This document shows, piece after piece, positions 6,590 through 53,911 of a DNA stretch of 64,000 bases (position 1 is its first letter; each line of letters starts with the position of its first letter). The stretch spans positions 140,652 through 204,651 of IMG/VR virus record IMGVR_UViG_3300035703_000010. The stretch is one strand, 5' to 3'. The notes beneath the pieces were generated by a model. It saw nothing but the letters and a program-made list of their open reading frames with translations. It was not told the DNA's origin and ran no database searches. Both the position numbers and the translations under genes were made by a program.

Positions 6590-7666
6590 ATGCAAAGAAC
6601 TTTATGCTTTGATGATGTACTATTAGTCCCTCAATACTCTGAAATTGAATCAAGAAAAAATGTTGATTTATCAGTTTCAGGGTTTGACGTTTCTGAAGCA
6701 CAACTGACTACTTCTCATCCTGTTTTAAAGTGTCCAATTGTTGGATCTCCGATGGATACAGTTATCAGTCCTGCTGCAGCTGCAATTCTAGAAGACTTTG
6801 GAGGCTTTGGAGTTCTTCATCGGTACTGTACGATTCAGGAATCAGTTAAAATGTTTTTAGAAACTGTCAGCAAATGCCCTGGCAGTCAAACGCCTAATAT
6901 CATGGTTGCTGTTGGAGCAACTGGCGATTATCTTGAAAGGGCCACTGCATTATACGAAGCAGGTTGTCGAGCTTTTTGTATCGATGTAGCGCATGGTCAT
7001 CATTCTTCTGTAAAGAATGCATTATCAGAAATGCGTTTAAAGTTTGCAAATGAAGTTCACATCATGACAGGAAACGTTGCAACCCTTGAAGCGTTTAACG
7101 ATTTAGCTGATTGGGGGTCAGATTCAATCCGCGTTGGCGTCGGAGGAGGTTCGATGTGTTCGACAAGAATCAGAACCGGTCATGGCGTTCCGACGTTACA
7201 ATCTATTATGGATTGTGCAAAATCTGATAGAGATGTTTTTATCGTTGCTGATGGAGGAATTCGCAATTCTGGCGATGCTGTTAAGGCTCTTGCTGCAGGT
7301 GCTGATATGATTATGCTTGGTTCAGTACTAGCAGGTCATGATGAATCTCCTGGAGAATTGATCGATTCGCACGGATTATCTTATCAAAACAAGCCATTAG
7401 GAATTAGCCTATTTAAAAAATTCAGAGGAATGGCGTCAAGAGAAGCTCAAATTCAATGGAGAGGAAGAGTTTCAGTCGTCGAAGGTGAATCAACAACAAT
7501 ACCTTACAAAGGATCATTATCAAACACAATAACTGATCTATTAGAAGGTATTAGATCTGGTCTTTCTTATTCTGGAGCTAGAACCATTAGAGAACTAAGA
7601 ACCAGCGCTAGATTCATCACAGTGACAGCACAAGGGGTCCGAGAAAACGGACCCCATGGTAAATGA
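6590..7666 (+). CDS. guaB: IMP dehydrogenase / GMP reductase family protein lacking CBS domains
   Basis: LCFDDVLLVP, SPMDTV, IDVAHG, catalytic loop GVGGGSMCSTR, ADGGI, GMAS, GIRSGLSYSGA; IMPDH versus GMPR not resolved. Confidence 0.85.
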   Translation: MQRTLCFDDVLLVPQYSEIESRKNVDLSVSGFDVSEAQLTTSHPVLKCPIVGSPMDTVISPAAAAILEDFGGFGVLHRYCTIQESVKMFLETVSKCPGSQTPNIMVAVGATGDYLERATALYEAGCRAFCIDVAHGHHSSVKNALSEMRLKFANEVHIMTGNVATLEAFNDLADWGSDSIRVGVGGGSMCSTRIRTGHGVPTLQSIMDCAKSDRDVFIVADGGIRNSGDAVKALAAGADMIMLGSVLAGHDESPGELIDSHGLSYQNKPLGISLFKKFRGMASREAQIQWRGRVSVVEGESTTIPYKGSLSNTITDLLEGIRSGLSYSGARTIRELRTSARFITVTAQGVRENGPHGK

Positions 7667-8547: not shown

Positions 8548-9552
8548 ATGGCTAAAGGATTAGACGTCGGTACATCATTTATAGTTCTTGCTGAAGAAGG
8601 CGCAAAAGGAAAAGTTACATACAAAGATTTCCGCGATGCTTTTTATGTCATCAAACCTACAACTCCAATTGCAACAAAGATGATTGAAAAGGGATTAGCA
8701 GGAAAAACTTTCGTTAAGGATGCCGATGGTTCTTTCATCATCCTTGGAAAAGACGCAATTGAGAAGGCAGTCGAGAGAAACGATTCAGCTAAGAGACCGA
8801 TGTATAAAGGCGTAGTTTCTTCAAAAGAAAAAGATGCAAGAAGAATTTTGACTTATATCCTTAAAGAAGTATCAGGAACACCAGCAGAACCAGGAGAAAA
8901 ATTAGTCTTCTGCGTACCAGCTCAACCTGTCGATCAAGAAGATGAGGATTTTGACGTCGGATACCATGAAGACGTAATCGTAAAACTTCTTACAGAAGTT
9001 GGGTATTCAGCACGTGCAATAAATGAGGCCGAAGCTCTTTGTTATTCTGAACTAGAAAAGGATGATTATACTGGAGTGGCTCTATCATGGGGCGCGGGAA
9101 TGGTTAACGTTTGCGTAATGCTCAATGGTGAACCTGTCGTTACTTTCTCTACAACGAAGTCTGGTGACTGGGTTGATCGCATGGCTGCAGTGGCTACTGG
9201 AGAACCTGATTCTATCGTTCAGGCAGAAAAGGAAAATGGAGATTTTACCGTAGGTCAGCCGAATGACAATCAAGTTCTTGCTGCGGTTGCTTCTTATTAT
9301 GATCGTCTAATCGATTACACGACGAAGCAATTGGCATCATCCATGGAAGGACATAAGTCTATTCCAAAGTTCAAGGATCCGCTTCCAGTCGTCGTTGCTG
9401 GAGGAACCTCAAAAGCAAAAGGATTCGTCGATCTTTTTGCAAAGAAACTTAATGAGAATGGTTTTCCGCTTCCTGTCAAAGAAGTTCGTCATGCAGCTGA
9501 TCCACTTCATGCTGTTGCTCGCGGTTGCCTAATCGCTGCGCAAATTATGTAA
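8548..9552 (+). CDS. Actin-like ATPase (MreB/MamK/ParM superfamily)
   Basis: Phosphate-1 GLDVGT, connect-1 INEAEA, phosphate-2 SWGAG, adenosine VAGGTS, connect-2 AVARGCL; SD AGGAG. Confidence 0.88.
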   Translation: MAKGLDVGTSFIVLAEEGAKGKVTYKDFRDAFYVIKPTTPIATKMIEKGLAGKTFVKDADGSFIILGKDAIEKAVERNDSAKRPMYKGVVSSKEKDARRILTYILKEVSGTPAEPGEKLVFCVPAQPVDQEDEDFDVGYHEDVIVKLLTEVGYSARAINEAEALCYSELEKDDYTGVALSWGAGMVNVCVMLNGEPVVTFSTTKSGDWVDRMAAVATGEPDSIVQAEKENGDFTVGQPNDNQVLAAVASYYDRLIDYTTKQLASSMEGHKSIPKFKDPLPVVVAGGTSKAKGFVDLFAKKLNENGFPLPVKEVRHAADPLHAVARGCLIAAQIM

Positions 9553-9660: not shown

Positions 9661-12354
9661 ATGACTACAAAAGTTCCTTCACGATTCGTAGGCCTTCACA
9701 GCCACTCGGGGTTTAGTACCTTTGATGGACTTGATTATCCGCAAGAACACATCGATTACGTTCTAGAGAACGGTATGGATGCCTGGTCGTTGACTGACCA
9801 TGGTCACATGAACGGATTCTGCCATGCATATCTTCATGCCGAGAAGATGAAAAAATCAGGTAAGAACTTCAAGTTCATTCCTGGCTGCGAGATGTACGTC
9901 CATCCTGATCTAAAACAATGGCAGATCGATCTCGATAAGTCGAGAGAAAAACCGATCAAGGACGAATCTATCCTCACACCCCTCGCTGCGATCGTTGACG
10001 GTAACGATGAAACGACTGACATCGGTACCGATGAAGCCGCATTGACCATCGAAAACGAGGAGGAAACAAAATCAGGCAAGTACAACGACCCGATCAAACG
10101 TCGGCATCATCTCGTTGTCCTACCGAAAACATCAATTGGCCTACAAAGGTTATTCCATCTAGTTTCTCGAGGTTATTTGGAGGGCTTCTATAGGTTCCCA
10201 CGAGTTGATTATGCGATGTTGAAGGAAGCCGCAAAGGGAGGTCATCTCATGATTTCAACAGCATGCCTAGGTGGTGTGCTGAGCTATGACGTCTTCTCAA
10301 AGGTTCAACGCGTCAAGTTCGATGACCTATCACACAAACTTCTTGATGATAGGAGCTTGCTTGAGTCAACCTTGCTTGAGATGGGTAACACATATGACAA
10401 ATTGGTTAATGCTGTAGGACGAGACAATGTTTGCCTTGAGCTACAATTCAACAAACTTCCAGCCCAACATCTTGTTAACCGCGCAATTCTTGAATTTGCG
10501 AAGAAGAATTCATTGACTGATCGACTCGTTGTAACTTGCGATTCTCATTATTCTCGTCCAGACAACTGGAAAGAGCGTGAGATCTACAAGAAGCTAGGAT
10601 GGCTTAATTACCAAAACTTCGATCCGAACATGCTGCCGAAGTCGAAGGACGATCTGAAGTGCGAGTTGTATCCAAAGAACGCACCTCAGGTCTGGGATTC
10701 CTACCTGTCCACGTCTGAAGACATGTCATTCTATGATGATGATGTTGTTCGTGAAGCAATCGAGCGGACTCATGACATCGTCCACAATGAAATCGGCGAT
10801 ATCCATCCTGATAAGGAGATGAAGCTACCATCCTACGTCATCCCTGAAGGATTCACTGAAGATAAAGCATTGGTCGATGCATGTAAGAAAGGTCTCATTT
10901 GGCGAGGGCTCGATGACAAGCCTGAGTACATCGAACGTATCAAGTATGAGCTATCGATCATCAAAGGTAAGAAGTTCTCACGCTACTTCTTGACGATGAA
11001 GGCGATCATGGATTTGGCACGAGAACATATGTTGATCGGGCCAGGTCGCGGATCTGCTGCAGGTTCTCTCGTTGCTTATGTTCTTGGTGTTACTAACCTT
11101 GACCCTATTGAATACGACTTATCATTTGAACGCTTCCTTAACCCATCTCGACAAGGCGCTCCTGATATCGATTCTGACATTGGAGATCGCGATAAACTAA
11201 TCGAGCTCATGCGCGAAAACTTTGGTAATAACAATGTTATCCCAATTTCTAACTACAATACTTTTAAGTTAAAGAGCCTCATTAAAGACATCGCGCGGTT
11301 CTACAACATCCCATTTGAAGAAGTCAATGCAGCCTTAGCTCCCGTTGAAGATGACGTAAAGAAAGAGGTCTTTAAGCCAGGAGTTGATAAGAATCTTTTC
11401 GTCTTGACTTATGAAGATGCGATGAAGTATTCAAAGTCGATGCAAGACTTCGTCGCAGCGCATCCAGAGGTTGCAGAACCTATCGAGATCTTATTCAAAC
11501 AAAACCGATCTCTCGGCCGACATGCGGGTGGCGTCATCGTGTCGGAGAACGTTGCAGAGAGGATGCCTCTTATTCTTGCTCGTGGCGAACCTCAAACCCC
11601 ATGGGTCGAAGGTATGCACTATAAACACCTAGAAGAGTTCGGCTGGATCAAATTCGATCTACTAGGTCTTGAAACCCTGCGCATTATCGAACGAGCTATC
11701 TACCTGATTCTGCAACGTCGAGAAGGTGTAGCAAATCCAACATTTAAGGATGTGAAGGCTTGGTTCGACAAGCATATGGATCCTAAGAATATCGATCTCA
11801 ATGATCAAAGGGTGTATGAATACGTTTATCATGAGGGACGATTTGCTGGTGTGTTCCAGTGTACGCAACCTGGTGCTCAACGATTGTTCACTAAGGCAAA
11901 GCCTCGCAGCATCATCGACATTGCAACTTTGACATCGATCTATCGTCCTGGTCCTCTAGCGGCCAATGTCGATAAGATCTATATCGGCGCCAAGAACGAA
12001 CCTGATAAGATCGATTACCAGCACCCTTTGATCAAGAAGGTGCTTGAGTCTACATACGGATGTTTACATGGATCAACTGTTATTACAACTGATATTGGAG
12101 ATATTACGATTGAAAAAATCGTAGAAGATCAGTTAGTCGGAACAAAATTGCCATCTTTTAACGAAGAATCTTGCGAGATTGAACAAGACGAAATTGTTGC
12201 TGCAGTTTGCACTGGCGTTCAAGAGACTCTAACGATTGAACTTGAAGATGGAAAAACTATTCGTTTAACATCAGATCATAGAGTGTACACAACTAGAGGC
12301 TGGGTCGAGGCTGGAGATTTGACTGCAGAAGACGAAATTTTTGGAATTGAATAG
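9661..12354 (+). CDS. dnaE: DNA polymerase III alpha subunit, N-terminal fragment (800 aa) fused to a split intein N-part
   Basis: PHP domain LHSHS..STFDG, LTDHG; GPGRGSAAGSLVAY; catalytic PDIDSD; HAGG; KFDLLGL; extein ends at ..LESTYG. Confidence 0.97.
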   Translation: MTTKVPSRFVGLHSHSGFSTFDGLDYPQEHIDYVLENGMDAWSLTDHGHMNGFCHAYLHAEKMKKSGKNFKFIPGCEMYVHPDLKQWQIDLDKSREKPIKDESILTPLAAIVDGNDETTDIGTDEAALTIENEEETKSGKYNDPIKRRHHLVVLPKTSIGLQRLFHLVSRGYLEGFYRFPRVDYAMLKEAAKGGHLMISTACLGGVLSYDVFSKVQRVKFDDLSHKLLDDRSLLESTLLEMGNTYDKLVNAVGRDNVCLELQFNKLPAQHLVNRAILEFAKKNSLTDRLVVTCDSHYSRPDNWKEREIYKKLGWLNYQNFDPNMLPKSKDDLKCELYPKNAPQVWDSYLSTSEDMSFYDDDVVREAIERTHDIVHNEIGDIHPDKEMKLPSYVIPEGFTEDKALVDACKKGLIWRGLDDKPEYIERIKYELSIIKGKKFSRYFLTMKAIMDLAREHMLIGPGRGSAAGSLVAYVLGVTNLDPIEYDLSFERFLNPSRQGAPDIDSDIGDRDKLIELMRENFGNNNVIPISNYNTFKLKSLIKDIARFYNIPFEEVNAALAPVEDDVKKEVFKPGVDKNLFVLTYEDAMKYSKSMQDFVAAHPEVAEPIEILFKQNRSLGRHAGGVIVSENVAERMPLILARGEPQTPWVEGMHYKHLEEFGWIKFDLLGLETLRIIERAIYLILQRREGVANPTFKDVKAWFDKHMDPKNIDLNDQRVYEYVYHEGRFAGVFQCTQPGAQRLFTKAKPRSIIDIATLTSIYRPGPLAANVDKIYIGAKNEPDKIDYQHPLIKKVLESTYGCLHGSTVITTDIGDITIEKIVEDQLVGTKLPSFNEESCEIEQDEIVAAVCTGVQETLTIELEDGKTIRLTSDHRVYTTRGWVEAGDLTAEDEIFGIE
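12061..12351 (+). mobile_element. Split intein N-fragment (IntN, 97 aa)
   Basis: Begins CLHGST (block A, Cys1); block B TSDHRVYT.RGWVEAGDL; ends at a stop codon with no endonuclease domain. Confidence 0.93.
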
Positions 12355-12364
12355 ACATATGGGT

Positions 12365-12400
12365 ATATTTATCTTCCAAGAAAGAGGCTCTTGGAAGATG
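12365..12400 (+). promoter_or_regulatory. Putative late promoter (ATATTTA) plus start-codon-sequestering hairpin of the endonuclease gene
   Basis: ATATTTA 12365-12371; ATCTTCCAAGA (12371-12381) / TCTTGGAAGAT (12389-12399) perfect 11-bp stem covering the AT of ATG 12398. Confidence 0.75.
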
Positions 12401-13303
12401 AGAACTTGTGAATGTTGTGATAAAAAATTTGTTTATACAGGACCAAAAGGAAAAAATTATCCCGCAAAGACTTGCAGCGCAGAATGTTATAAGATATTAA
12501 GATCAAAAAAAATATCTCAATCAAACATCGATAGAAGGATACACGAAAAAGTAGAAAAGATTTGCGAAATTTGTGGTACGATAATCATAACAAATGATAC
12601 AGAGAACCAACGCATAACTTGCTCTAAGAAATGTCATTCTAAGAGATTATCGAAATTATACGCAGGAAGAAAAATAACTGAAGAGTGGCGACAAAATCAG
12701 AATAAGTCAAAGACTAAAGACAAAATTGTAAAGCATGGAGATTTTTCATGTGATAAATGTCAAAAACATTTTGATACCAACACTTCGCTTAGATCTCATA
12801 GATCATATTGTACTCCTGGAAATGAAGGTCATATTTGTTGCGAAATATGCAATAAGAGTTTTTCTACGCGAGGGTACAAGATCCATTTTAAGAGTCATGA
12901 TTTAATATGGAGATCGAAGACTACAAGTTCTCTTCAAAAATCTCTACTAACAAGAACGAAATGTCAGACTACCTCTAAATCAGAGTTAGAATTTTTTGAA
13001 AAATTAAAGTCTTTGTTGGGTGATGATGTTGTACACAAGTTTAAAATTGAAGGAATTACTCATGAATATGATTTTTTTGTTCCTTCAAAAAATGTTATCA
13101 TAGAGTTTGATGGTGATTATTGGCATGGCAATAAGAAGCTATACGAGTTATCTTCTAGAATGAAACGTCAATATCAGATTGATAAAGTGTGGAATGAAAA
13201 AGCAATAGCTGCTGGGTATAGAATAATAAGAGTTTGGGCATCAGAGTCAAAAGATTTTAAGTTGGAAAATTATGTTAACACCCTTGAAAATAAAGTCGAT
13301 TAA
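12398..13303 (+). CDS. Free-standing homing endonuclease: zinc fingers plus a Vsr/DUF559-like nuclease domain
   Basis: CxxC..TCS..C twice, CxxC..H..C and CxxC..H..H fingers, then SKSELEF..YDF..IIEFDGDYWH..G.RIIRVW; sits between the two intein halves; ATG 12398 preferred over 12341. Confidence 0.85.
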   Translation: MRTCECCDKKFVYTGPKGKNYPAKTCSAECYKILRSKKISQSNIDRRIHEKVEKICEICGTIIITNDTENQRITCSKKCHSKRLSKLYAGRKITEEWRQNQNKSKTKDKIVKHGDFSCDKCQKHFDTNTSLRSHRSYCTPGNEGHICCEICNKSFSTRGYKIHFKSHDLIWRSKTTSSLQKSLLTRTKCQTTSKSELEFFEKLKSLLGDDVVHKFKIEGITHEYDFFVPSKNVIIEFDGDYWHGNKKLYELSSRMKRQYQIDKVWNEKAIAAGYRIIRVWASESKDFKLENYVNTLENKVD

Positions 13304-13385
13304 ACGTGACGTACCTGCAAAAGTTTATGATATTCAAACCAAGAAAAATCATAACTTCATTGCAAATGGCTTCTTAGTTCATAAT
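13272..13385 (+). mobile_element. Split intein C-fragment (IntC, 38 aa)
   Basis: MLTPLKIKSIK..VYDIQT..NHNFIANGFLVHN followed by Cys+1 (TGC 13386-13388). Confidence 0.93.
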
Positions 13386-14555
13386 TGCATAATTTTTCAA
13401 GAGCAAACTATGAAGTTATGTTCTGTCGTTGCTGGGTTCCCGGAGGCTGAAACTGACACGATTCGTAGAAACATCATGAAGCGTTCTGCGTCTAAAAAGG
13501 ATGCAGCTGCTGCAGACGCGAAGAAGGCAAAAGAAGACTTCGTCGCCGGAGCGATGAAGAACGGTGTGCCTGAAAAGGTGGCTGATGAACTATACGAGAA
13601 GATTCTCTTCTTCTCTGGCTACGGCTTTAACGCTTCTCACGCAGTGTCTTACGCAATTGATTCATATTACTGTGCCTGGCTTCTCACCTACTTTGAGGAG
13701 GAATGGCTATGCGCTTACCTCGAGTCGATGTCAGGAAATGATGAAAAGCGTGCTAAGGCATTCTCTGAAGTCAAGGCATTAGGTTACAAGATCGTCAACA
13801 TCGACATCAACTATGCAACGAAGAGCTGGACGATCCTGGATGGTAAACGATTCATGCCTAGCTTCCTTTCATGTAAGGGTGTAGGGGAATCCGCAGTAGA
13901 AGAAATCATGGAAAATCGTCCGTATAAATCAGTGGAAGATATGTTATGGAATGAGGATGGGTCATGGAGGCATTCCAAGTTCAATAAACGTGCCTTGGAG
14001 GCCCTCATTGCAATTAAGGCATTTGATTCTCTTGATTGTATCGGTCATGATAGGACTTTCACCGGATACAAACACATGAGTGAGATCTTGATCAACAGAA
14101 ACGGCGATATCAAGAAACATACAAAGAAGAATCCGACTGCAGGAATCGAAGCATTCCGTGAAGCTTTGATCGATACGAAGAACATGGATGAATGGTCCAG
14201 ATCAGAATTGGTAGATAACAGCATAAAGTATCTCGGTTCATTCAACGCTGCGATGCTGATGCCAGAAGAGATCTTACAAAAGCTTGAGAGCAGAGGAGTC
14301 AAGTCTGTTGATGATTTATCTGAAAGCGACATCTATTGGTTTATCGTTTCTGATACAAAGCCTAAGAAAACGAAGACAGGAAAAAACTATTTGTTGTTAA
14401 CGATTACTGGGCTTGGAGGACAAAACCATAGGTTGTTCTGTTGGGGATGGAATGGCGAAACAGAAATTCCCAAGTACAGCGTTTGCCTTTCAGAAATCAC
14501 CGTAGATGGCTACGGTAATAAAACTTTCATGAGTAAGATTAAAGTCCTTGATTGA
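13272..14555 (+). CDS. dnaE: IntC fused to the DNA polymerase III alpha C-terminal fragment
   Basis: After the intein: CIIFQEQ, FSGYGFNASHAVSYA, helix-hairpin-helix KGVGESA, C-terminal OB-fold-like region. Confidence 0.95.
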   Translation: MLTPLKIKSIKRDVPAKVYDIQTKKNHNFIANGFLVHNCIIFQEQTMKLCSVVAGFPEAETDTIRRNIMKRSASKKDAAAADAKKAKEDFVAGAMKNGVPEKVADELYEKILFFSGYGFNASHAVSYAIDSYYCAWLLTYFEEEWLCAYLESMSGNDEKRAKAFSEVKALGYKIVNIDINYATKSWTILDGKRFMPSFLSCKGVGESAVEEIMENRPYKSVEDMLWNEDGSWRHSKFNKRALEALIAIKAFDSLDCIGHDRTFTGYKHMSEILINRNGDIKKHTKKNPTAGIEAFREALIDTKNMDEWSRSELVDNSIKYLGSFNAAMLMPEEILQKLESRGVKSVDDLSESDIYWFIVSDTKPKKTKTGKNYLLLTITGLGGQNHRLFCWGWNGETEIPKYSVCLSEITVDGYGNKTFMSKIKVLD

Positions 14556-45131: not shown

Positions 45132-46655
45132 ATGGCAATCTTATCAATAAGAAACTTCGGCAATATACAAATATTGAGAGTTGATTCTAATCCAGAGGGT
45201 ATATCTGCTCCTACAAATTCACTTGCGACAGTATCCACTAGTCGAAACGTTTACAGAAACGTCGGAGGGACTAGCTGGCAATTATTGAATTCTGTTTCTA
45301 TATTACCTCCAGTTGTTCCGAAGCCAGGTTCCGGATCTGGTTCAGGTTCCGGAGGCGCACAAGGTGCTCAAGGAAGAGTTGGGCATCAAGGTCTTCAAGG
45401 CCTTCAAGGATATCAAGGAAGCCAAGGTACTATGGGCACACAAGGTGTTCAAGGTGCACAAGGCGCTTTTGGGTATGGACCTCAAGGAAATAGAGGTCCT
45501 CAAGGCCTTCAAGGCGTCCAAGGTGATGATGGTGTCCAAGGACCTCAAGGTGTTCCAGGATCTCAAGGAGCAACTGGTATTGGAGCTCAAGGATATCAAG
45601 GCCGACCTGGAAATAAAGGAGAAGATGCAACTGAACCTGGTCCTCAAGGTTATCAAGGTCCTCAAGGTAATACAGGACCTGCAGGAACGTCAGGAACTCA
45701 AGGCCTTCAAGGAGCTCAAGGCGTTCAAGGAGCTCAAGGAAGAGTAGGCCCTAACGGGTCTATTGGTCCTCAGGGTCTTCAAGGTGCCCAAGGACGACAA
45801 GGATCAGGCGGAATCGGTCAACAAGGTTCACAAGGATATGATGGTGCGCAAGGTAGATCTGGATCAGCTGGATCTCAAGGTACTCAAGGCGCTCAAGGAC
45901 ATCCTGGATCTGACGAAATTGGAGCTCAAGGTGCTCAAGGAGTTCAAAGCGTAGTTGCAGGCCCTCGAGGATATGCTGGATTAATTGGCCCACAAGGTGG
46001 GATAGGCCCACAAGGCGATACTGGAGCTCAAGGATACGGAATACCAGGTCCTCAAGGTGACGTTGGTGCTCAAGGGCATCAAGGTAGAATCGGTTCGAAT
46101 GGGTTATCAGGAAATACTGGAGATTCTAACGGGTCAGCTTTGATTCTAGTTGAAGCAAAACAAATCAGCACTGGAGTTCAAACAGTAACATTCGAAAATC
46201 TAGATGGAGATTCTGATAGAATTTATTTTATTAGAGGAAGAGTGTTAAGACCAGCAGGATCTGCAGGAACTACATTTACTTATTCAGTTCGTCCTAATGG
46301 ATTAACAACTAATTTAGCTTATATAAGCTACGGTGGATATTATAGCACCGCTGCAGGATCAAACGCTATCTCAACCAGCGCAGGATCTAGTGGGTATTTG
46401 ATAGGTAGCAGCACTTCTACAACAAGATTTGATCTTCAGATGTGGATTTCTGCTGAAAAAACGTTGCCTAGACTCTTCGACATCGCTATTAGCAGAAGAG
46501 TTTTTGATGGATCAAACCAACAATTTGATGTTTGGAGAAGCGGGGTTCGTTGGAATGAAACTACAACGAATTTAACATCAATAGAAATTAACTGTGATAG
46601 ATCTGGCGGTCTTGCTGCTGGAACTGAGCTTTACCTTTATAAATTAGTATGCTGA
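45132..46655 (+). CDS. Collagen-like fibre protein 1 (Gly-X-Gln)
   Basis: Long G-X-Y run dominated by GAQ/GPQ; shared N-domain (LRVD..P.G..NVGGTSW) and C-domain. Confidence 0.88.
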   Translation: MAILSIRNFGNIQILRVDSNPEGISAPTNSLATVSTSRNVYRNVGGTSWQLLNSVSILPPVVPKPGSGSGSGSGGAQGAQGRVGHQGLQGLQGYQGSQGTMGTQGVQGAQGAFGYGPQGNRGPQGLQGVQGDDGVQGPQGVPGSQGATGIGAQGYQGRPGNKGEDATEPGPQGYQGPQGNTGPAGTSGTQGLQGAQGVQGAQGRVGPNGSIGPQGLQGAQGRQGSGGIGQQGSQGYDGAQGRSGSAGSQGTQGAQGHPGSDEIGAQGAQGVQSVVAGPRGYAGLIGPQGGIGPQGDTGAQGYGIPGPQGDVGAQGHQGRIGSNGLSGNTGDSNGSALILVEAKQISTGVQTVTFENLDGDSDRIYFIRGRVLRPAGSAGTTFTYSVRPNGLTTNLAYISYGGYYSTAAGSNAISTSAGSSGYLIGSSTSTTRFDLQMWISAEKTLPRLFDIAISRRVFDGSNQQFDVWRSGVRWNETTTNLTSIEINCDRSGGLAAGTELYLYKLVC

Positions 46656-49150
46656 TGAAAGGAACATGATATGGCTGTTTTATTAAGAAAAAAATTTGGC
46701 ATCATAGACTTGTTAAGAGTTGATGCTGTTCCTGATGGAATAACGGCTCCTGTTAATTCATTGGCAACGTTGTCGACTAATGGAAGCATCTATAAAAACG
46801 TAGGAGGGACTTCATGGCAATTAGTGAGTTCTTCAACGTTACTTCTTCCTTCTAATGATGAAGGTGGACAAGAAGGAGGCGGAGGAGCGGGTTCTCAAGG
46901 CGCTCAAGGAGCAAGAGGCGTACAAGGTGCTCAAGGTGCTCAAGGACCAGTCGGAAATGAAGGTTCAAAAGGAACTTCTGGATTAGGTGGGCCAGGAGGT
47001 GATTCTGGTTCCGGAGCGCAAGGTTTACAAGGGCCTCAAGGATTATTAGGACCACAAGGTCGTCCTGGGATGGTCGGCGCGCAAGGACATCAAGGAGTCC
47101 AAGGAGCAAACGGCGATACTACCCAACAAGGGCCGCAAGGAAATCCTGGAATCAAAGGTGCAGATGGTTCAGATAGCATTGGGTCAATTGGCCCGCAAGG
47201 GTTGCCTGGATCGCAAGGACCTCAAGGACAAAGTTATGCTGGTTATGCTGGACATAGAGGCATGTCAGGAGATACTGGTCCTCAGGGATCTTCTAATAAT
47301 TCTCCAGGATTAACTGGACATACTGGATCACCAGGGCTTCCTGGAGATGGTGTACAAGGACCAGCAGGAAGCCCTGGTGATCCAGGGCCTCAAGGCGAAC
47401 CTGGTAATTCTGGATCTAGAGGTCATCAAGGAGCCCAGGGTATTCAAGGAAATGGAATCCAAGGGCAACAAGGAGCTCAAGGGGATAGAGGACCTCAAGG
47501 AACTATAGGGGTCATAGGGTCGCAAGGATCAATCGGCCCACAGGGCATAATAGGATCTCAAGGAGCTCAAGGTCCAATACTTCAAGGCGCTCAAGGTGTT
47601 CAAGGAAACGTTGGAGCTCAAGGTGATGTTGGAAATCAAGGATCAGCAGGATCTTCAGGAGTTCCAAATAGCGGATTGATATTGATAGAAAGCAAGTATG
47701 TTACTGACTCTGCAGCTTCATCTTTAACATTTTCAGATTTAGATGGAGATGTCGAAAAGAGTTACCTTCTAGTGTATAGATTATATGTTGAAGGATCTTC
47801 CTCAACGTTGTTCAATATTGATCTTAGACCTAACGGACAAACGACAGATATTTCAGGCGTTTACAGAACATCATATTCTTCAACGACGACAAACGGAAGT
47901 TTGTCTTCTCCATTGATCACTTCCGTTAGAGGAACTGGGTATGCTTTCGGAACATTTAGAATTTCAGGAAAAACAGGAATTCCTAGGTTCCTTTTTTCAA
48001 ACTATGTAGGTTATTCTCCTGCTCTTTCTGCTTTCTTTTCAGCCGAAAATGCGGTCTACTGGAATGAAACGACAACAAACTTGACTTCTCTAGTCGTTTT
48101 TGGTTCAAGTTCAGGGGTAGAAAGCTCATGTATAGGAGTTGGTAGCGAGTTTCATCTTTACAAATATGAGGTAGCATAATGTCAGTCTTATCTAGAAGAA
48201 GTTTTGGTAACATTGAATTATTAAGAGTTAATTCAAACCCAGATGGATCTGTAAGTTCTACCGTCGGATCTCTAGCAATAGTTGCATCCACTGGAATTAC
48301 TTACAAAAACGTAGGAGGAACTAGCTGGATAGCGACAAACTCTTCTGGTGTCGGAGGGTCAGGTGCACAAGGTGCGCAAGGAGCACAAGGTTTCATCGGA
48401 CTTCCTGGTGACAGAGGGACTCAAGGAGTTCAAGGTGTTCAAGGTGACGTCGGTTCTCAAGGAGCTCAAGGTGATACAGGAAGCGGTGCTCAAGGCGTTC
48501 AAGGAGACATAGGCCCTCAAGGGGCTCAAGGAATTAGTCCAACAGGAGCCCAAGGCGCTAGAGGATATCAAGGAAATGATGGCTCATATTCACCTCCAGA
48601 GAACATGAGAGGACCACAAGGCGTTCAAGGAGCTCAAGGAAGTTCTGGAGTAAGCCAAAGAGGAACTCAAGGTGTGATTGGGCAAACCGGTCCACAAGGC
48701 GATCCATCTGATGGAGAAATTGGCGCGCAGGGAGCTCAAGGGCTTCCTGGATTTCAAGGCGCTCAGGGATTACCTGGAGAATCTTCGAACGTTCAAGGTC
48801 CTCAAGGTTCTCAAGGCGCTCAAGGATATCAAGGATATGCAGATGGTCCAATGGGTGCCCAAGGCACTCAAGGTTCGCAAGGATCTCCTGGTGCAGCTGG
48901 GCCTCAAGGATATCAAGGCTATCAAGGGTTCGGAGGCGTAGTTGGCCCGCAAGGGCACCAGGGAGCATCAGGCCCACAAGGATATCAAGGTGCTCAAGGT
49001 GTACAAGGACTTACTGGACCTGATGGAAATCCAGGATTCCAAGGGTATCAAGGTCCAGAAGGAGTACAAGGTCCTCAAGGATTACAGGGGCATCAAGGAG
49101 CACAAGGCGTCCAAGGAACAATAGGGTTACAAGGAGTACAAGGATCTGGG
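45350..49150 (+). repeat. Three blocks of 9-nt periodic coding repeats (..CAAGG..)
   Basis: Recurrent GCTCAAGG/CCTCAAGG/TTCAAGG from Gly-X-Gln codons at about 45350-46130, 46890-47660 and 48360-49150. Confidence 0.85.
46671..48179 (+). CDS. Collagen-like fibre protein 2
   Basis: Same tripartite architecture. Confidence 0.88.
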   Translation: MAVLLRKKFGIIDLLRVDAVPDGITAPVNSLATLSTNGSIYKNVGGTSWQLVSSSTLLLPSNDEGGQEGGGGAGSQGAQGARGVQGAQGAQGPVGNEGSKGTSGLGGPGGDSGSGAQGLQGPQGLLGPQGRPGMVGAQGHQGVQGANGDTTQQGPQGNPGIKGADGSDSIGSIGPQGLPGSQGPQGQSYAGYAGHRGMSGDTGPQGSSNNSPGLTGHTGSPGLPGDGVQGPAGSPGDPGPQGEPGNSGSRGHQGAQGIQGNGIQGQQGAQGDRGPQGTIGVIGSQGSIGPQGIIGSQGAQGPILQGAQGVQGNVGAQGDVGNQGSAGSSGVPNSGLILIESKYVTDSAASSLTFSDLDGDVEKSYLLVYRLYVEGSSSTLFNIDLRPNGQTTDISGVYRTSYSSTTTNGSLSSPLITSVRGTGYAFGTFRISGKTGIPRFLFSNYVGYSPALSAFFSAENAVYWNETTTNLTSLVVFGSSSGVESSCIGVGSEFHLYKYEVA

Positions 49151-49645
49151 TTTTCTGACCAGGACTTAGTTTTATTAGAAAGCATATACGTTACTGGATC
49201 TGCGGCATCTTCAGTTACGTTTTCTAACTTAGATGGAAACACGGATAGAATGTATCTCATGGTCTACACAATAAAAGTTGGTGGCCCTTCAACGGGAGTC
49301 AACTATGACATTTCGATAAGGCCAAACAATTTAACCACAAATCAAGTTAGCTTCTTTAACGTAGCTTCTTCTGCAGGAATAGGACGTGGTTATTATTCTC
49401 CTATATTATTATCTAGAAACGCAAAAGGTACGACGCTGTTCGGAATGGTCGAAATAGCTGCGCAAACATCAGCGCAAAGAATATTCTCTATTAGATACAC
49501 TGCAACAACAGCAGTTACTGGCACGGCTTTTGGACATTGGAATGAAACTTCTACAAATTTGACTTCATTAGTCATCACGTCGGGTACATCCAGCACTTTA
49601 GACGTTGGTAGCGAATTCCACCTGTACAAGTATGCCACTGCATGA
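48179..49645 (+). CDS. Collagen-like fibre protein 3
   Basis: Same tripartite architecture; start overlaps the previous stop. Confidence 0.88.
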   Translation: MSVLSRRSFGNIELLRVNSNPDGSVSSTVGSLAIVASTGITYKNVGGTSWIATNSSGVGGSGAQGAQGAQGFIGLPGDRGTQGVQGVQGDVGSQGAQGDTGSGAQGVQGDIGPQGAQGISPTGAQGARGYQGNDGSYSPPENMRGPQGVQGAQGSSGVSQRGTQGVIGQTGPQGDPSDGEIGAQGAQGLPGFQGAQGLPGESSNVQGPQGSQGAQGYQGYADGPMGAQGTQGSQGSPGAAGPQGYQGYQGFGGVVGPQGHQGASGPQGYQGAQGVQGLTGPDGNPGFQGYQGPEGVQGPQGLQGHQGAQGVQGTIGLQGVQGSGFSDQDLVLLESIYVTGSAASSVTFSNLDGNTDRMYLMVYTIKVGGPSTGVNYDISIRPNNLTTNQVSFFNVASSAGIGRGYYSPILLSRNAKGTTLFGMVEIAAQTSAQRIFSIRYTATTAVTGTAFGHWNETSTNLTSLVITSGTSSTLDVGSEFHLYKYATA

Positions 49646-52051: not shown

Positions 52052-52275
52052 TAAACTACCTTTGATAACTCGCTTGAAAGAAAAGGACCTTCTATTAAAT
52101 CTTCAAAAAGAACATAATGATTCCAACAATAACTTTCAGAAACATTTTCTACATGTTTACTAGGATAATTGTTTGATGGTTTCGAAGACACAACAATACC
52201 ACATTTAGGTTTAAAGATATGATATACTAAGTCTCCGTTGTTTATTTTGCTTAACAAATTATACCTTAGAATCAT
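52051..52275 (-). CDS. Small hypothetical protein
   Basis: NGDLVYH..GIVV; coupled. Confidence 0.45.
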   Translation of the reverse strand: MILRYNLLSKINNGDLVYHIFKPKCGIVVSSKPSNNYPSKHVENVSESYCWNHYVLFEDLIEGPFLSSELSKVV

Positions 52276-53869
52276 TTAAAACTACGGCGTCTAAAGTCAT
52301 GAAAAGTTTTGCTACAGAAGTTGAATTTTTCAATGCTGTCTTAGTCACTTTTGCTGGATCAATAATTCCTGCTGAAATTAAATTGATAAACTTTCCTGTA
52401 GATGCATCATATCCTAGTCTTTGTTCTTTGTTTCTTGCCATTTCTTCTTCAACGACGTCAGCAGACTTATCTGAATTTTCAACAATTCTTCTTAAAGGCG
52501 CCTTACAAGCCTTAAGAACAACTTCTATACCAGCAAGAATATCTCTATCATAATCATTCTGCAATAGAACTGTCTTTGCTTCTTCTGCTGCGTAAAAAAG
52601 AGCTGAACCGCCGCCTGGAACAATTCCATCTTCAGCTGCTGCTCTTGTTGCATGTAAAGCATCTTCAATTCGATACTTTCTTTCAATCATTTCAATTTCT
52701 GTTGCACCACCGACCTTAATGATAGCAACACCAGAAGCTAATCTCGCAATTCTCATTTTTAAAATTGAAAGTTCTTCTTGGCTTAGCGTAATATCAGCCG
52801 ATCTGTTTCTTAGATCTTCTACATAAGAACTTACGTTTTCTTGAGTTGATTCGACACCAACAATAGTCGTTGATTTTGCATCAACGATAACTTTTTTCAT
52901 TTTGCCGAGTTCATTTAATGTCGTTTTTTCAAGAGAAGTTCCGTTTGTGCTCGAAATTAAAGTTGCTCCAGTTAGGACGCAAATGTCATTCAAGTAATCT
53001 GTTTTTGATGGACCGAATCCAGGAGCTTTGATTGCAATCACTTGAAGCTGAGTTTTTACTCTATTCAAAACCAATCCTTGTAGAGCTTCTCCTTCTACAT
53101 CATCAGCGATGATTAATAGAGGTTTTCTTGCTTCTAAAGTTCTTTCTAGAACTGGAAGGATGTCTTTAATCGTCGAGATTTTCTTGTCAGTAACTAGAAC
53201 ATATGCATCGTTATAACATGCATGCATTTTTTCATTATTTGTTACGAAATAAGGCGATAGATACCCTCTATCAAATTGCATGCCGTCGACGACATCAAGA
53301 GCAGTTGTCGTTCCTTTTGCGTCCTCTACAGTAATGATTCCGTCTCTTCCAACCTTTTCCATTGCCGAAGCGAGGATTTCTCCTATTTTTTCATCACCGT
53401 TTGCACTGATCGTGCCAATTTGTTTAATTTTTTCTGATGATTCTACTGGAGTTGACATTACTGACAAAAAGCTAGTTATCGTTTTAGTAGCTATGTCTAA
53501 TCCTTCGCATAACTTTTTAGAGTTATACCCAGCATCTAGAAGTTTCATTCCTTCTTTTACTAACGCGTGAGTAAGAACAGTAGAAGTAGTTGTACCATCG
53601 CCAGCAACATCATTGGTTTGAGAAGCTGCTTCTCTAAGTAGCTGAGCTCCCATCATTTCAAGAGGATCTGATAGTTTTACTGATTTGCTTACAGTAACTC
53701 CATCTTTAGTGACGATAGGAGAATTATTGCCGTTTTGGATTAGAACAGTCTTTCCGTTGGGTCCTAGCGTGCAGCTTACTGCTTCTGCAGCTAATCTCAA
53801 TCCATTATAAAGCTTTTTTCTTGCGTCTTTAGAAAAGACAATTCCTTCTACTTTAGTTTCAACATTCAT
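52259..53869 (-). CDS. groEL: Chaperonin GroEL (group I)
   Basis: TLGPNG, VTKDGVTV, AGDGTTTST, GMQFDRGYLSPYF, KVGGATE, VPGGG, GIIDPAKV; no GGM tail; start moved to ATG 53869. Confidence 0.97.
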   Translation of the reverse strand: MNVETKVEGIVFSKDARKKLYNGLRLAAEAVSCTLGPNGKTVLIQNGNNSPIVTKDGVTVSKSVKLSDPLEMMGAQLLREAASQTNDVAGDGTTTSTVLTHALVKEGMKLLDAGYNSKKLCEGLDIATKTITSFLSVMSTPVESSEKIKQIGTISANGDEKIGEILASAMEKVGRDGIITVEDAKGTTTALDVVDGMQFDRGYLSPYFVTNNEKMHACYNDAYVLVTDKKISTIKDILPVLERTLEARKPLLIIADDVEGEALQGLVLNRVKTQLQVIAIKAPGFGPSKTDYLNDICVLTGATLISSTNGTSLEKTTLNELGKMKKVIVDAKSTTIVGVESTQENVSSYVEDLRNRSADITLSQEELSILKMRIARLASGVAIIKVGGATEIEMIERKYRIEDALHATRAAAEDGIVPGGGSALFYAAEEAKTVLLQNDYDRDILAGIEVVLKACKAPLRRIVENSDKSADVVEEEMARNKEQRLGYDASTGKFINLISAGIIDPAKVTKTALKNSTSVAKLFMTLDAVVLNDSKV

Positions 53870-53911
53870 ATAATGTGATAATAGTAAGGTCTTTATCAAT
53901 CTTGTACACGG

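Follow-up and report, generated by a model that had tools for sequence, protein, structure and literature searches.

How does a phage assemble its replicative DNA polymerase when the gene for it is broken in two and another gene lies between the pieces? The question is raised by dnaE in a 64,000-nucleotide stretch of DNA (here called the window) of IMG/VR record UViG_3300035703_000010 (204,651 bp), which comes from an uncultured phage with a genome of about 205 kb. The locus is very probably a fractured replicative-polymerase gene that carries a selfish cassette, made up of the N-terminal half of a split intein (IntN), a free-standing homing-endonuclease gene (HEG) and the C-terminal half of the intein (IntC), in that order; rejoining of the two polymerase parts by protein trans-splicing, and homing of the cassette, are what we infer from it.

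Layout of the Locus

All three open reading frames (ORFs) of the locus lie on the plus strand. ORF1 (9661-12354, 897 amino acids) encodes the N-terminal part of DnaE followed by the 97-residue IntN, and stops at a TAG codon at 12352-12354. Its N-extein (9661-12060) has 800 residues comprising the PHP domain, the Pol III alpha domain and the first part of the finger domain, and ends ...KVLESTYG, after which IntN (12061-12351) runs from CLHGST to FGIE. ORF2 (12398-13303, 301 amino acids) is the HEG, with an open frame that reaches back to 12341. ORF3 (13272-14555, 427 amino acids) opens with the 38-residue IntC (13272-13385), in which block F reads YDI and block G ends in VHN, and continues into the C-extein (13386-14555, 389 amino acids and the stop codon), which starts with CIIFQEQ and contains the remainder of the finger domain, the HhH and an intact GYGFNASH motif. 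A preliminary description of this DNA had already placed the LESTYG end of the N-extein, the CLHGST start of IntN and the stop codon, positions that hold to the base, and its 38-residue IntC ending in VHN before CIIFQEQ was confirmed in ORF3. Two polypeptides are thus read from dnaE, DnaE(1-800)-IntN and IntC-DnaE(801-1189), and the endonuclease is translated separately between them in a third frame. Since the three ORFs occupy three different reading frames, the arrangement is not a frame-shifted bifunctional intein. ORF2 and ORF3 share 32 nt at the 3' end of ORF2.

The insert spans exactly 12061-13385 (1325 bp) and separates the Gly codon from the Cys codon in the finger-domain motif TYG↓CIIFQEQ (the arrow marks the insertion point); these bounds can be set because intein-free relatives read through the same junction uninterrupted. 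Eleven such relatives read ...T[YFH]G↓[CTA]I[IV]FQE[QS]..., which bears out the earlier proposal that the joined sequence is a conserved DnaE motif. Cys stands at +1 in seven of the 11: the close relatives have it already, and the more distant ones have Thr or Ala. Empty-site DNA reads ...ACATACGG[A/T]↓TGCAT..., and the corresponding protein ...TYG↓CIIFQEQTMKLCSVV is uninterrupted. Intein-free DnaEs are many in IMG/VR and other metagenomes and are up to 97% identical over 100 residues on each side of the junction. The DnaEs of cultured phages are less than 30% identical to that of the window (tblastn), and megablast found no match to the locus among 50,697 phage records. The insertion site is also distinct from the cyanobacterial one, EY↓CFNKSH, as had been claimed: its counterpart GYGFNASH (ORF3 residues 116-123) is uninterrupted and lies 80 residues downstream of TYG↓C.

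The Intein Halves and Their Probable Trans-Splicing

Both halves score well above the cut-offs of curated intein profiles, with 37.3 bits for TIGR01445 intein_Nterm (cut-off 24.5) over ORF1 residues 801-877 and 40 bits for TIGR01443 intein_Cterm (cut-off 15.6) over ORF3 residues 17-39. The best solved match of IntN is the NrdJ-1 intein 8ubs (E 7e-8), and that of IntC is the Spl DnaX mini-intein 7cfv (residues 106-137); IntN also resembles the Ssp/Npu-type DnaE intein 1zd7 (E 5.5e-7). Solved inteins align to the two halves at complementary positions, and PF14890 covers positions 10-92 in IntN and 122-155 in IntC. The block A nucleophile, Cys1, is the first residue of the insert (codon 12061-12063) and block B is T70-S-D-H73; with the block G features and an in-frame insertion absent from orthologues, all the sequence marks of a class 1 HINT intein are present. 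So are those of a naturally split one, as IntN ends at TAG, IntC has its own ATG and each half is fused to one extein part. The charges of the halves are complementary, as in other natural split inteins (net -16 and isoelectric point 4.1 for IntN, net +5 and 10.1 for IntC).

Contiguous mini-intein alleles were found at the same site in two independent metagenomic lineages, P0008 (L020/L021) and P0010 (L022), and each consists of IntN, two to four amino acids and IntC. The halves in the window thus together make up a single HINT domain, and the break falls between blocks B and F, the canonical position.

Metagenomes were searched for further insertions at this site, as the preliminary description had proposed, and 31 distinct IntN and 13 IntC sequences were recovered. 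Cys1, T70 and H73 are invariant in every one of the former, which are 46-100% identical, and H37, N38 and Cys+1 (...VHN↓C) are invariant in all of the latter, so that the catalytic residues hold down to about 40-50% identity. Comparison of the window with the related locus L002 gave ratios of nonsynonymous to synonymous change (dN/dS) of 0.03 for IntN, 0.04 for IntC and 0.07 for the endonuclease. From the invariant residues and this strong purifying selection we infer that IntN and IntC splice in trans. The acidic IntN and the basic IntC would associate into one HINT fold and go through the class 1 steps, namely an N-S acyl shift at Cys1, trans-thioesterification to Cys+1, cyclisation of Asn38 and an S-N shift. 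The product would be a full-length DnaE, ...STYG-CIIFQEQ..., identical to that of intein-free alleles.

The halves might instead have stopped splicing and serve as a non-covalent dimerisation module that joins the DnaE fragments, in the manner of the intein-less split NrdA of phage Aeh1. Working fragmented enzymes without splicing have been documented (PMC3045599), and the splicing of this particular pair is itself read from sequence. However, the invariance of Cys1, T70/H73, His37-Asn38 and Cys+1 in all homologues examined argues that chemistry, beyond mere binding, is under selection, and the low dN/dS of both halves points the same way, which makes a non-splicing module very improbable.

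When 1.84 billion representative sequences were searched with IntN, the motif emerged as a hot spot with insertions at TYG↓C, TYGx↓C and TYGxx↓C. Split-like N fragments make up 79 of the 150 best IntN matches, and their hosts, judged from the residues before Cys1, are apparently DnaE, ribonucleotide reductases (...NP↓C), ligases (KxDG↓C) and helicases (...DE↓C). Given these mixed hosts, the intein belongs to a general phage split-intein pool. It was not found in cultured phages, in which the best matches are 36% identical and lie in ribonucleotide reductase and helicase inteins.

The Polymerase Parts

A stop codon and a foreign ORF interrupt dnaE, and the gene could be regarded as inactivated by the endonuclease insertion and decaying, with the phage replicating by means of the host polymerase or another enzyme. 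Yet both extein parts are full-length and every domain is present. The DnaE equivalog profile NF004226 of NCBIfam covers positions 4-676 in ORF1 and 675-1016 in ORF3, a seamless join. The Pfam profile DNA_pol3_finger runs from 9 to 114 in ORF1, which carries the first two-thirds of the finger domain, and from 113 to 165 in ORF3, and phrog_405 (E 7e-165 for the N-extein) is matched up to 716 in ORF1 and from 714 in ORF3. Pfam PHP and DNA_pol3_alpha also match the N-extein, and HHH_6 the C-extein. Dozens of diverged genomes keep this arrangement, and each part is under strong purifying selection. A decaying dnaE is thus even less probable than a non-splicing one.

The Endonuclease Gene and Its Hairpin

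A separate, Vsr-like nuclease ORF between the halves had been proposed, and the proposal stands. The protein encoded by ORF2 has two CxxC...CSxxC (Cys4) modules at its N-terminus, one CCHC and one classical C2H2 zinc finger at residues about 116-167, and a predicted Vsr-like/EDxHD nuclease domain at the C-terminus (residues about 190-290 of 301). Its PHROG matches are to "homing endonuclease" and HNH families. A phmmer search of the full protein against the PDB found C2H2 zinc-finger proteins only, and a profile of the family found C2H2 proteins at E 1e-17, with zinc fingers accounting for all 60 matches listed. Since the sequence searches yielded zinc fingers, the nuclease fold was examined through predicted structure. 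An AlphaFold2 model (pLDDT 86.8) was compared with the PDB by Foldseek, and among the top four matches were Vsr 1cw0 (E 3e-4), I-Bth0305I 3r3p (E 1.7e-3) and 1vsr (E 3.6e-3), all at probability 1.00. As modelled, the nuclease domain has a fold of the Vsr/I-Bth0305I type.

Fifty-five homologues were collected, several of them named "very-short-patch-repair endonuclease" by JGI. Their alignment keeps the two CxxC...CSxxC modules, the CCHC and CCHH fingers and a C-terminal block ...HEYD...IIEFDGDYWHGN...D...GYxIxRVW. Residues E196, D225, G239, W242, H243, N245 and D262 are invariant, and the conserved E-x-D-G-D-x-W-H block is flanked by invariant acidic residues, D225 upstream and D262 downstream. 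Across 30 homologues, D225, E236, D238, H243 and D262 vary little or not at all, as the EDxHD motif predicts; their catalytic role is a putative one, read from the alignment. With its CCHC and C2H2 fingers and two Cys4 modules joined to a Vsr-like EDxHD domain, the predicted protein looks like a natural "zinc-finger nuclease"; no report of a CCHC/C2H2 and Vsr-like architecture was found in the literature searched. In each of the ten genomic contexts examined, the family member is flanked by IntN and IntC at this dnaE motif, so that the family is still tied to the TYG...QEQ codons across phage lineages whose DnaE exteins are 31-39% identical.

The HEG is preceded by an RNA hairpin that reaches into its start (12368-12402, plus strand). 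The stem is 14 bp long, the Shine-Dalgarno sequence AGAGG occupies the loop, and the 3' arm contains the endonuclease AUG (12398-12400). Its fold energy is -22.2 kcal/mol (z -3.3). It is found in five loci, with pairing in 95.5% of cells and compensatory changes in three pairs; slid controls gave 46-57%. Translational hairpins have been reported for 15 of the 16 endonucleases of fractured genes (PMC2677866), and this one agrees with them; it would throttle translation of the endonuclease by hiding the start codon and the ribosome-binding site. The ATG at 12398 is the conserved start, and two others were considered: the TTG at 12341 was rejected, as the conserved hairpin presents 12398, and so was the ATG at 12359, which is not conserved in L002. 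No plus-strand terminator was found between the three ORFs, so their co-transcription is likely. Promoter- and terminator-like sites around the locus were no commoner than in shuffled sequence, and no promoter is therefore claimed for the endonuclease gene.

Another way to account for the gap between the halves, named in the preliminary description, is that the intein is contiguous and 12352-13271 is a self-splicing intron with an endonuclease gene, whose removal at the RNA level would yield a cis-splicing mini-intein. Exact deletion of that interval would bring both frames together, contiguous alleles with a linker of two to four residues do exist, and Vsr-like endonucleases are known within group I introns (PMC2677866, PMC3239194). 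Against this, Rfam shows no group I, group II or other family at E <= 1 within 11800-13700, and the 46 nt of 5' non-coding space and the 32-nt overlap of endonuclease and IntC leave no room for an intron core. In relatives, IntC has a conserved ATG or GTG start of its own, and in one of them (L026) the halves are separate ORFs without any gene between them. The intron is less credible still than a decaying gene. Least credible of all is an assembly or chimera artefact, to which an uncultured viral contig might be thought prone, as proteins 99-100% identical to those of the window occur on several independent contigs (P0001, seven sequences and two contigs; P0121, ten sequences and three contigs) and the homologous loci were drawn from JGI, ENA and Logan samples.

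Mobility and Allelic Variety

How the fractured dnaE came by its cassette was approached by comparing the window (L001) with L002. The cassette DNA is 83-87% identical and the exteins 67-73%, with a sharp drop at the boundary of IntC and the extein; the synonymous difference is 0.53-0.62 in the cassette versus 0.83-0.84, which is saturated, in the exteins. The closest DnaE relatives of the window have no cassette, and L002 carries it in a far more diverged dnaE. A cassette that is more conserved than its host gene, and that is missing from the nearest DnaEs, points to recent horizontal transfer, apparently as one unit.

The product of the middle gene would be a homing endonuclease of the Vsr-like EDxHD type that reads DNA via its zinc fingers and probably cuts dnaE alleles without the cassette, be they intein-free or contiguous mini-intein ones. 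During co-infection, recombinational repair would copy the whole cassette into the cut allele. Homing by such repair would explain the lower age of the cassette compared with its host gene, and its independent spread.

The alleles at this one dnaE site are varied and include the empty site, the contiguous mini-intein, the split intein with an endonuclease gene, the split intein without one and the split intein with extra genes. In the IntN tree the contiguous alleles are nested within a well-supported clade (98/97) of split alleles; breaking or re-fusion has occurred more than once.

Several related loci are of interest in their own right. In L032 (3111-4521), whose DnaE is 31-39% identical, the same intein and endonuclease families are found two residues downstream, at SRGLL↓CYQEQ; the cassette or its target preference is shifted by 6 nt inside the same motif. 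In L026 (6311-6771), dnaE is split at the same site with adjacent halves and no endonuclease gene, and the GTG of IntC overlaps the TGA of IntN (GTGA), an overlap that suggests the two became translationally coupled once the endonuclease gene was lost. The distant relatives L023 (7814-10573) and L024 (7901-9474) have halves 1.6-2.8 kb apart, with extra ORFs besides the endonuclease gene, one of them on the opposite strand; this spacing looks like a step towards unlinking of the halves. DnaE is encoded in three or four pieces in L025 (267-6178), L027 (1340-8041) and L028 (1437-7050). Another break lies at GYGFNx↓SH in L025 and L028, four residues past the cyanobacterial site, and L025 and L027 are in addition broken upstream of TYG↓C. 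Further break sites in this phage DnaE family lie near residue 205 and between about residues 465 and 502, and the intervening ORFs differ at some breaks, an example being a TnsA-like 346-residue ORF in L027. At an upstream split site in the PHP domain, L020 (2461-2658) and L022 (3789-4004) have an ORF of 65-71 amino acids between IntN and IntC and no endonuclease gene; the short ORF may be what is left of an endonuclease gene, or may have nothing to do with one.

Some points weigh against a fractured gene with a trans-splicing, homing cassette as set out here. Splicing, endonuclease activity and homing are all deduced at the level of sequence. The identity of L001 and L002 climbs only gradually toward the cassette on the N side, so tracts of gene conversion could obscure what exactly was transferred as a unit, and either intein-free or contiguous-intein alleles could be the target of the endonuclease. 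The ribosome-binding site of ORF3 is weak. The match of the endonuclease to the Vsr profile TIGR00632 (E 1e-4, 22.5 bits) is below the curated cut-off of 97.85, and it is the predicted fold and the conserved motifs that support the family assignment.

Relation to Known Systems

Fractured genes were defined by Dassa, London, Stoddard, Schueler-Furman and Pietrokovski in 2009, with DnaE among the hosts (PMC2677866). Their Global Ocean Sampling (GOS) metagenomes contained three DnaE loci (DnaE-1, -2 and -3) with split inteins and free-standing endonucleases at three mutually different, non-cyanobacterial insertion points, and the endonuclease of DnaE-2 is Vsr-like, with the Vsr domain at residues 196-315. 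The preliminary description was right that fractured genes are known from environmental phage sequence; it undersold this prior work, in which one of three DnaE loci already had a Vsr-like HEG, and so overstated the novelty of the locus. The window shares with those loci the host protein, the order on one strand (host N part with IntN, free-standing HEG, IntC with host C part) and a site other than the cyanobacterial one. With the 2009 fractured genes more widely it shares a Vsr-like endonuclease, an HEG whose 3' end overlaps the C-half gene and a hairpin before the HEG start. It differs in that the 2009 DnaE loci were short-read assemblies, none of them among the listed or modelled full-length split-intein pairs, whereas this locus is complete and lies in a 205-kb genome. 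NUMOD-3 motifs were reported in two of the 2009 Vsr-like proteins and zinc fingers went unmentioned, while the endonuclease in the window has zinc fingers. TYG↓C may itself be one of the three insertion points of DnaE-1, -2 and -3.

The cyanobacterial Ssp and Npu DnaE inteins have the same host enzyme, and they too are class 1 inteins with Cys1 and Cys+1, the canonical split point and an acidic IntN with a basic IntC. The intein in the window is nevertheless not an allele of the cyanobacterial family, as the counterpart of EY↓CFNKSH is intact and lies 80 residues downstream of the insertion. The Ssp and Npu halves are encoded at unlinked loci, in contrast to the adjacent halves flanking an HEG here, and the nearest solved relative of IntN is NrdJ-1, also a fractured-gene intein, and not Npu or Ssp. 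Among cellular DnaE inteins, the bacterial PolIII-alpha sites a-d and g cluster within 75 residues of the finger domain (Novikova et al. 2016, PMC4760082), and the insertion in the window likewise falls in a finger-domain hot spot. A cellular DnaE (P0207/P0325, on a 1.3-Mb contig) has a large contiguous intein of about 430 amino acids at TYGI↓C...HN↓CVYQEQ, one residue downstream of TYG↓C; the intein in the window differs from it in being split and phage-borne and in having a free-standing endonuclease with it.

The predicted nuclease domain superposes on I-Bth0305I of the EDxHD family (PMC3239194; 3r3p, probability 1.00, target-normalised TM 0.63) and also on Vsr (1cw0, 1vsr). I-Bth0305I is intron-encoded and has NUMOD/helix-turn-helix elements, whereas the protein in the window is free-standing between intein halves and has CCHC and C2H2 fingers and two Cys4 modules. 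Literature searches for later fractured DnaE, jumbo-phage Pol III inteins or C2H2-Vsr homing endonucleases found nothing relevant. The locus is a complete further example of an arrangement known since 2009 and not a new kind of thing; the zinc-finger/Vsr architecture and the allelic series at a single site may be undescribed, a suggestion that is made tentatively.

Neighbouring Genes

The source phage is large and encodes collagen-like tail fibres and a GroEL homologue. Three tandem paralogues of about 500 amino acids each, with collagen-like tail-fibre repeats, lie at 45132-49645 on the plus strand (G+C 0.39-0.49, versus about 0.35 window-wide), and a GroEL-type chaperonin (phrog_5725, E 1.5e-151) lies at 52259-53899 on the minus strand. 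The gene directly upstream of dnaE (8548-9552, plus strand) encodes an actin-fold protein with a full-length match to Pfam Volactin (PF25216; E 1e-66) and a weak one to MreB. Before it, at 6590-7666 on the plus strand, is an IMPDH/GMP-reductase-like gene, unbroken here; IMPDH was among the fractured hosts of the 2009 study.

Broader Implications

Current understanding is not overturned by the fractured dnaE locus. For use as a tool, it offers a natural split pair of 97 and 38 residues, kin of the fast NrdJ-1/gp41 group, with G at -1 and C-I-I at +1 to +3 as its native junction, and natural contiguous versions of the pair are on hand for comparison. The related loci have also revealed putative zinc-finger DNA recognition in an endonuclease family. 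For the phage itself, the locus presents a complete-genome case in which building the replicative polymerase would depend on protein trans-splicing, and in which intein and endonuclease appear to act as a single mobile unit. Related loci supply every intermediate state proposed for gene fracturing, and, if this reading is true, the allelic series makes the gene-breaking model of 2009 directly testable.

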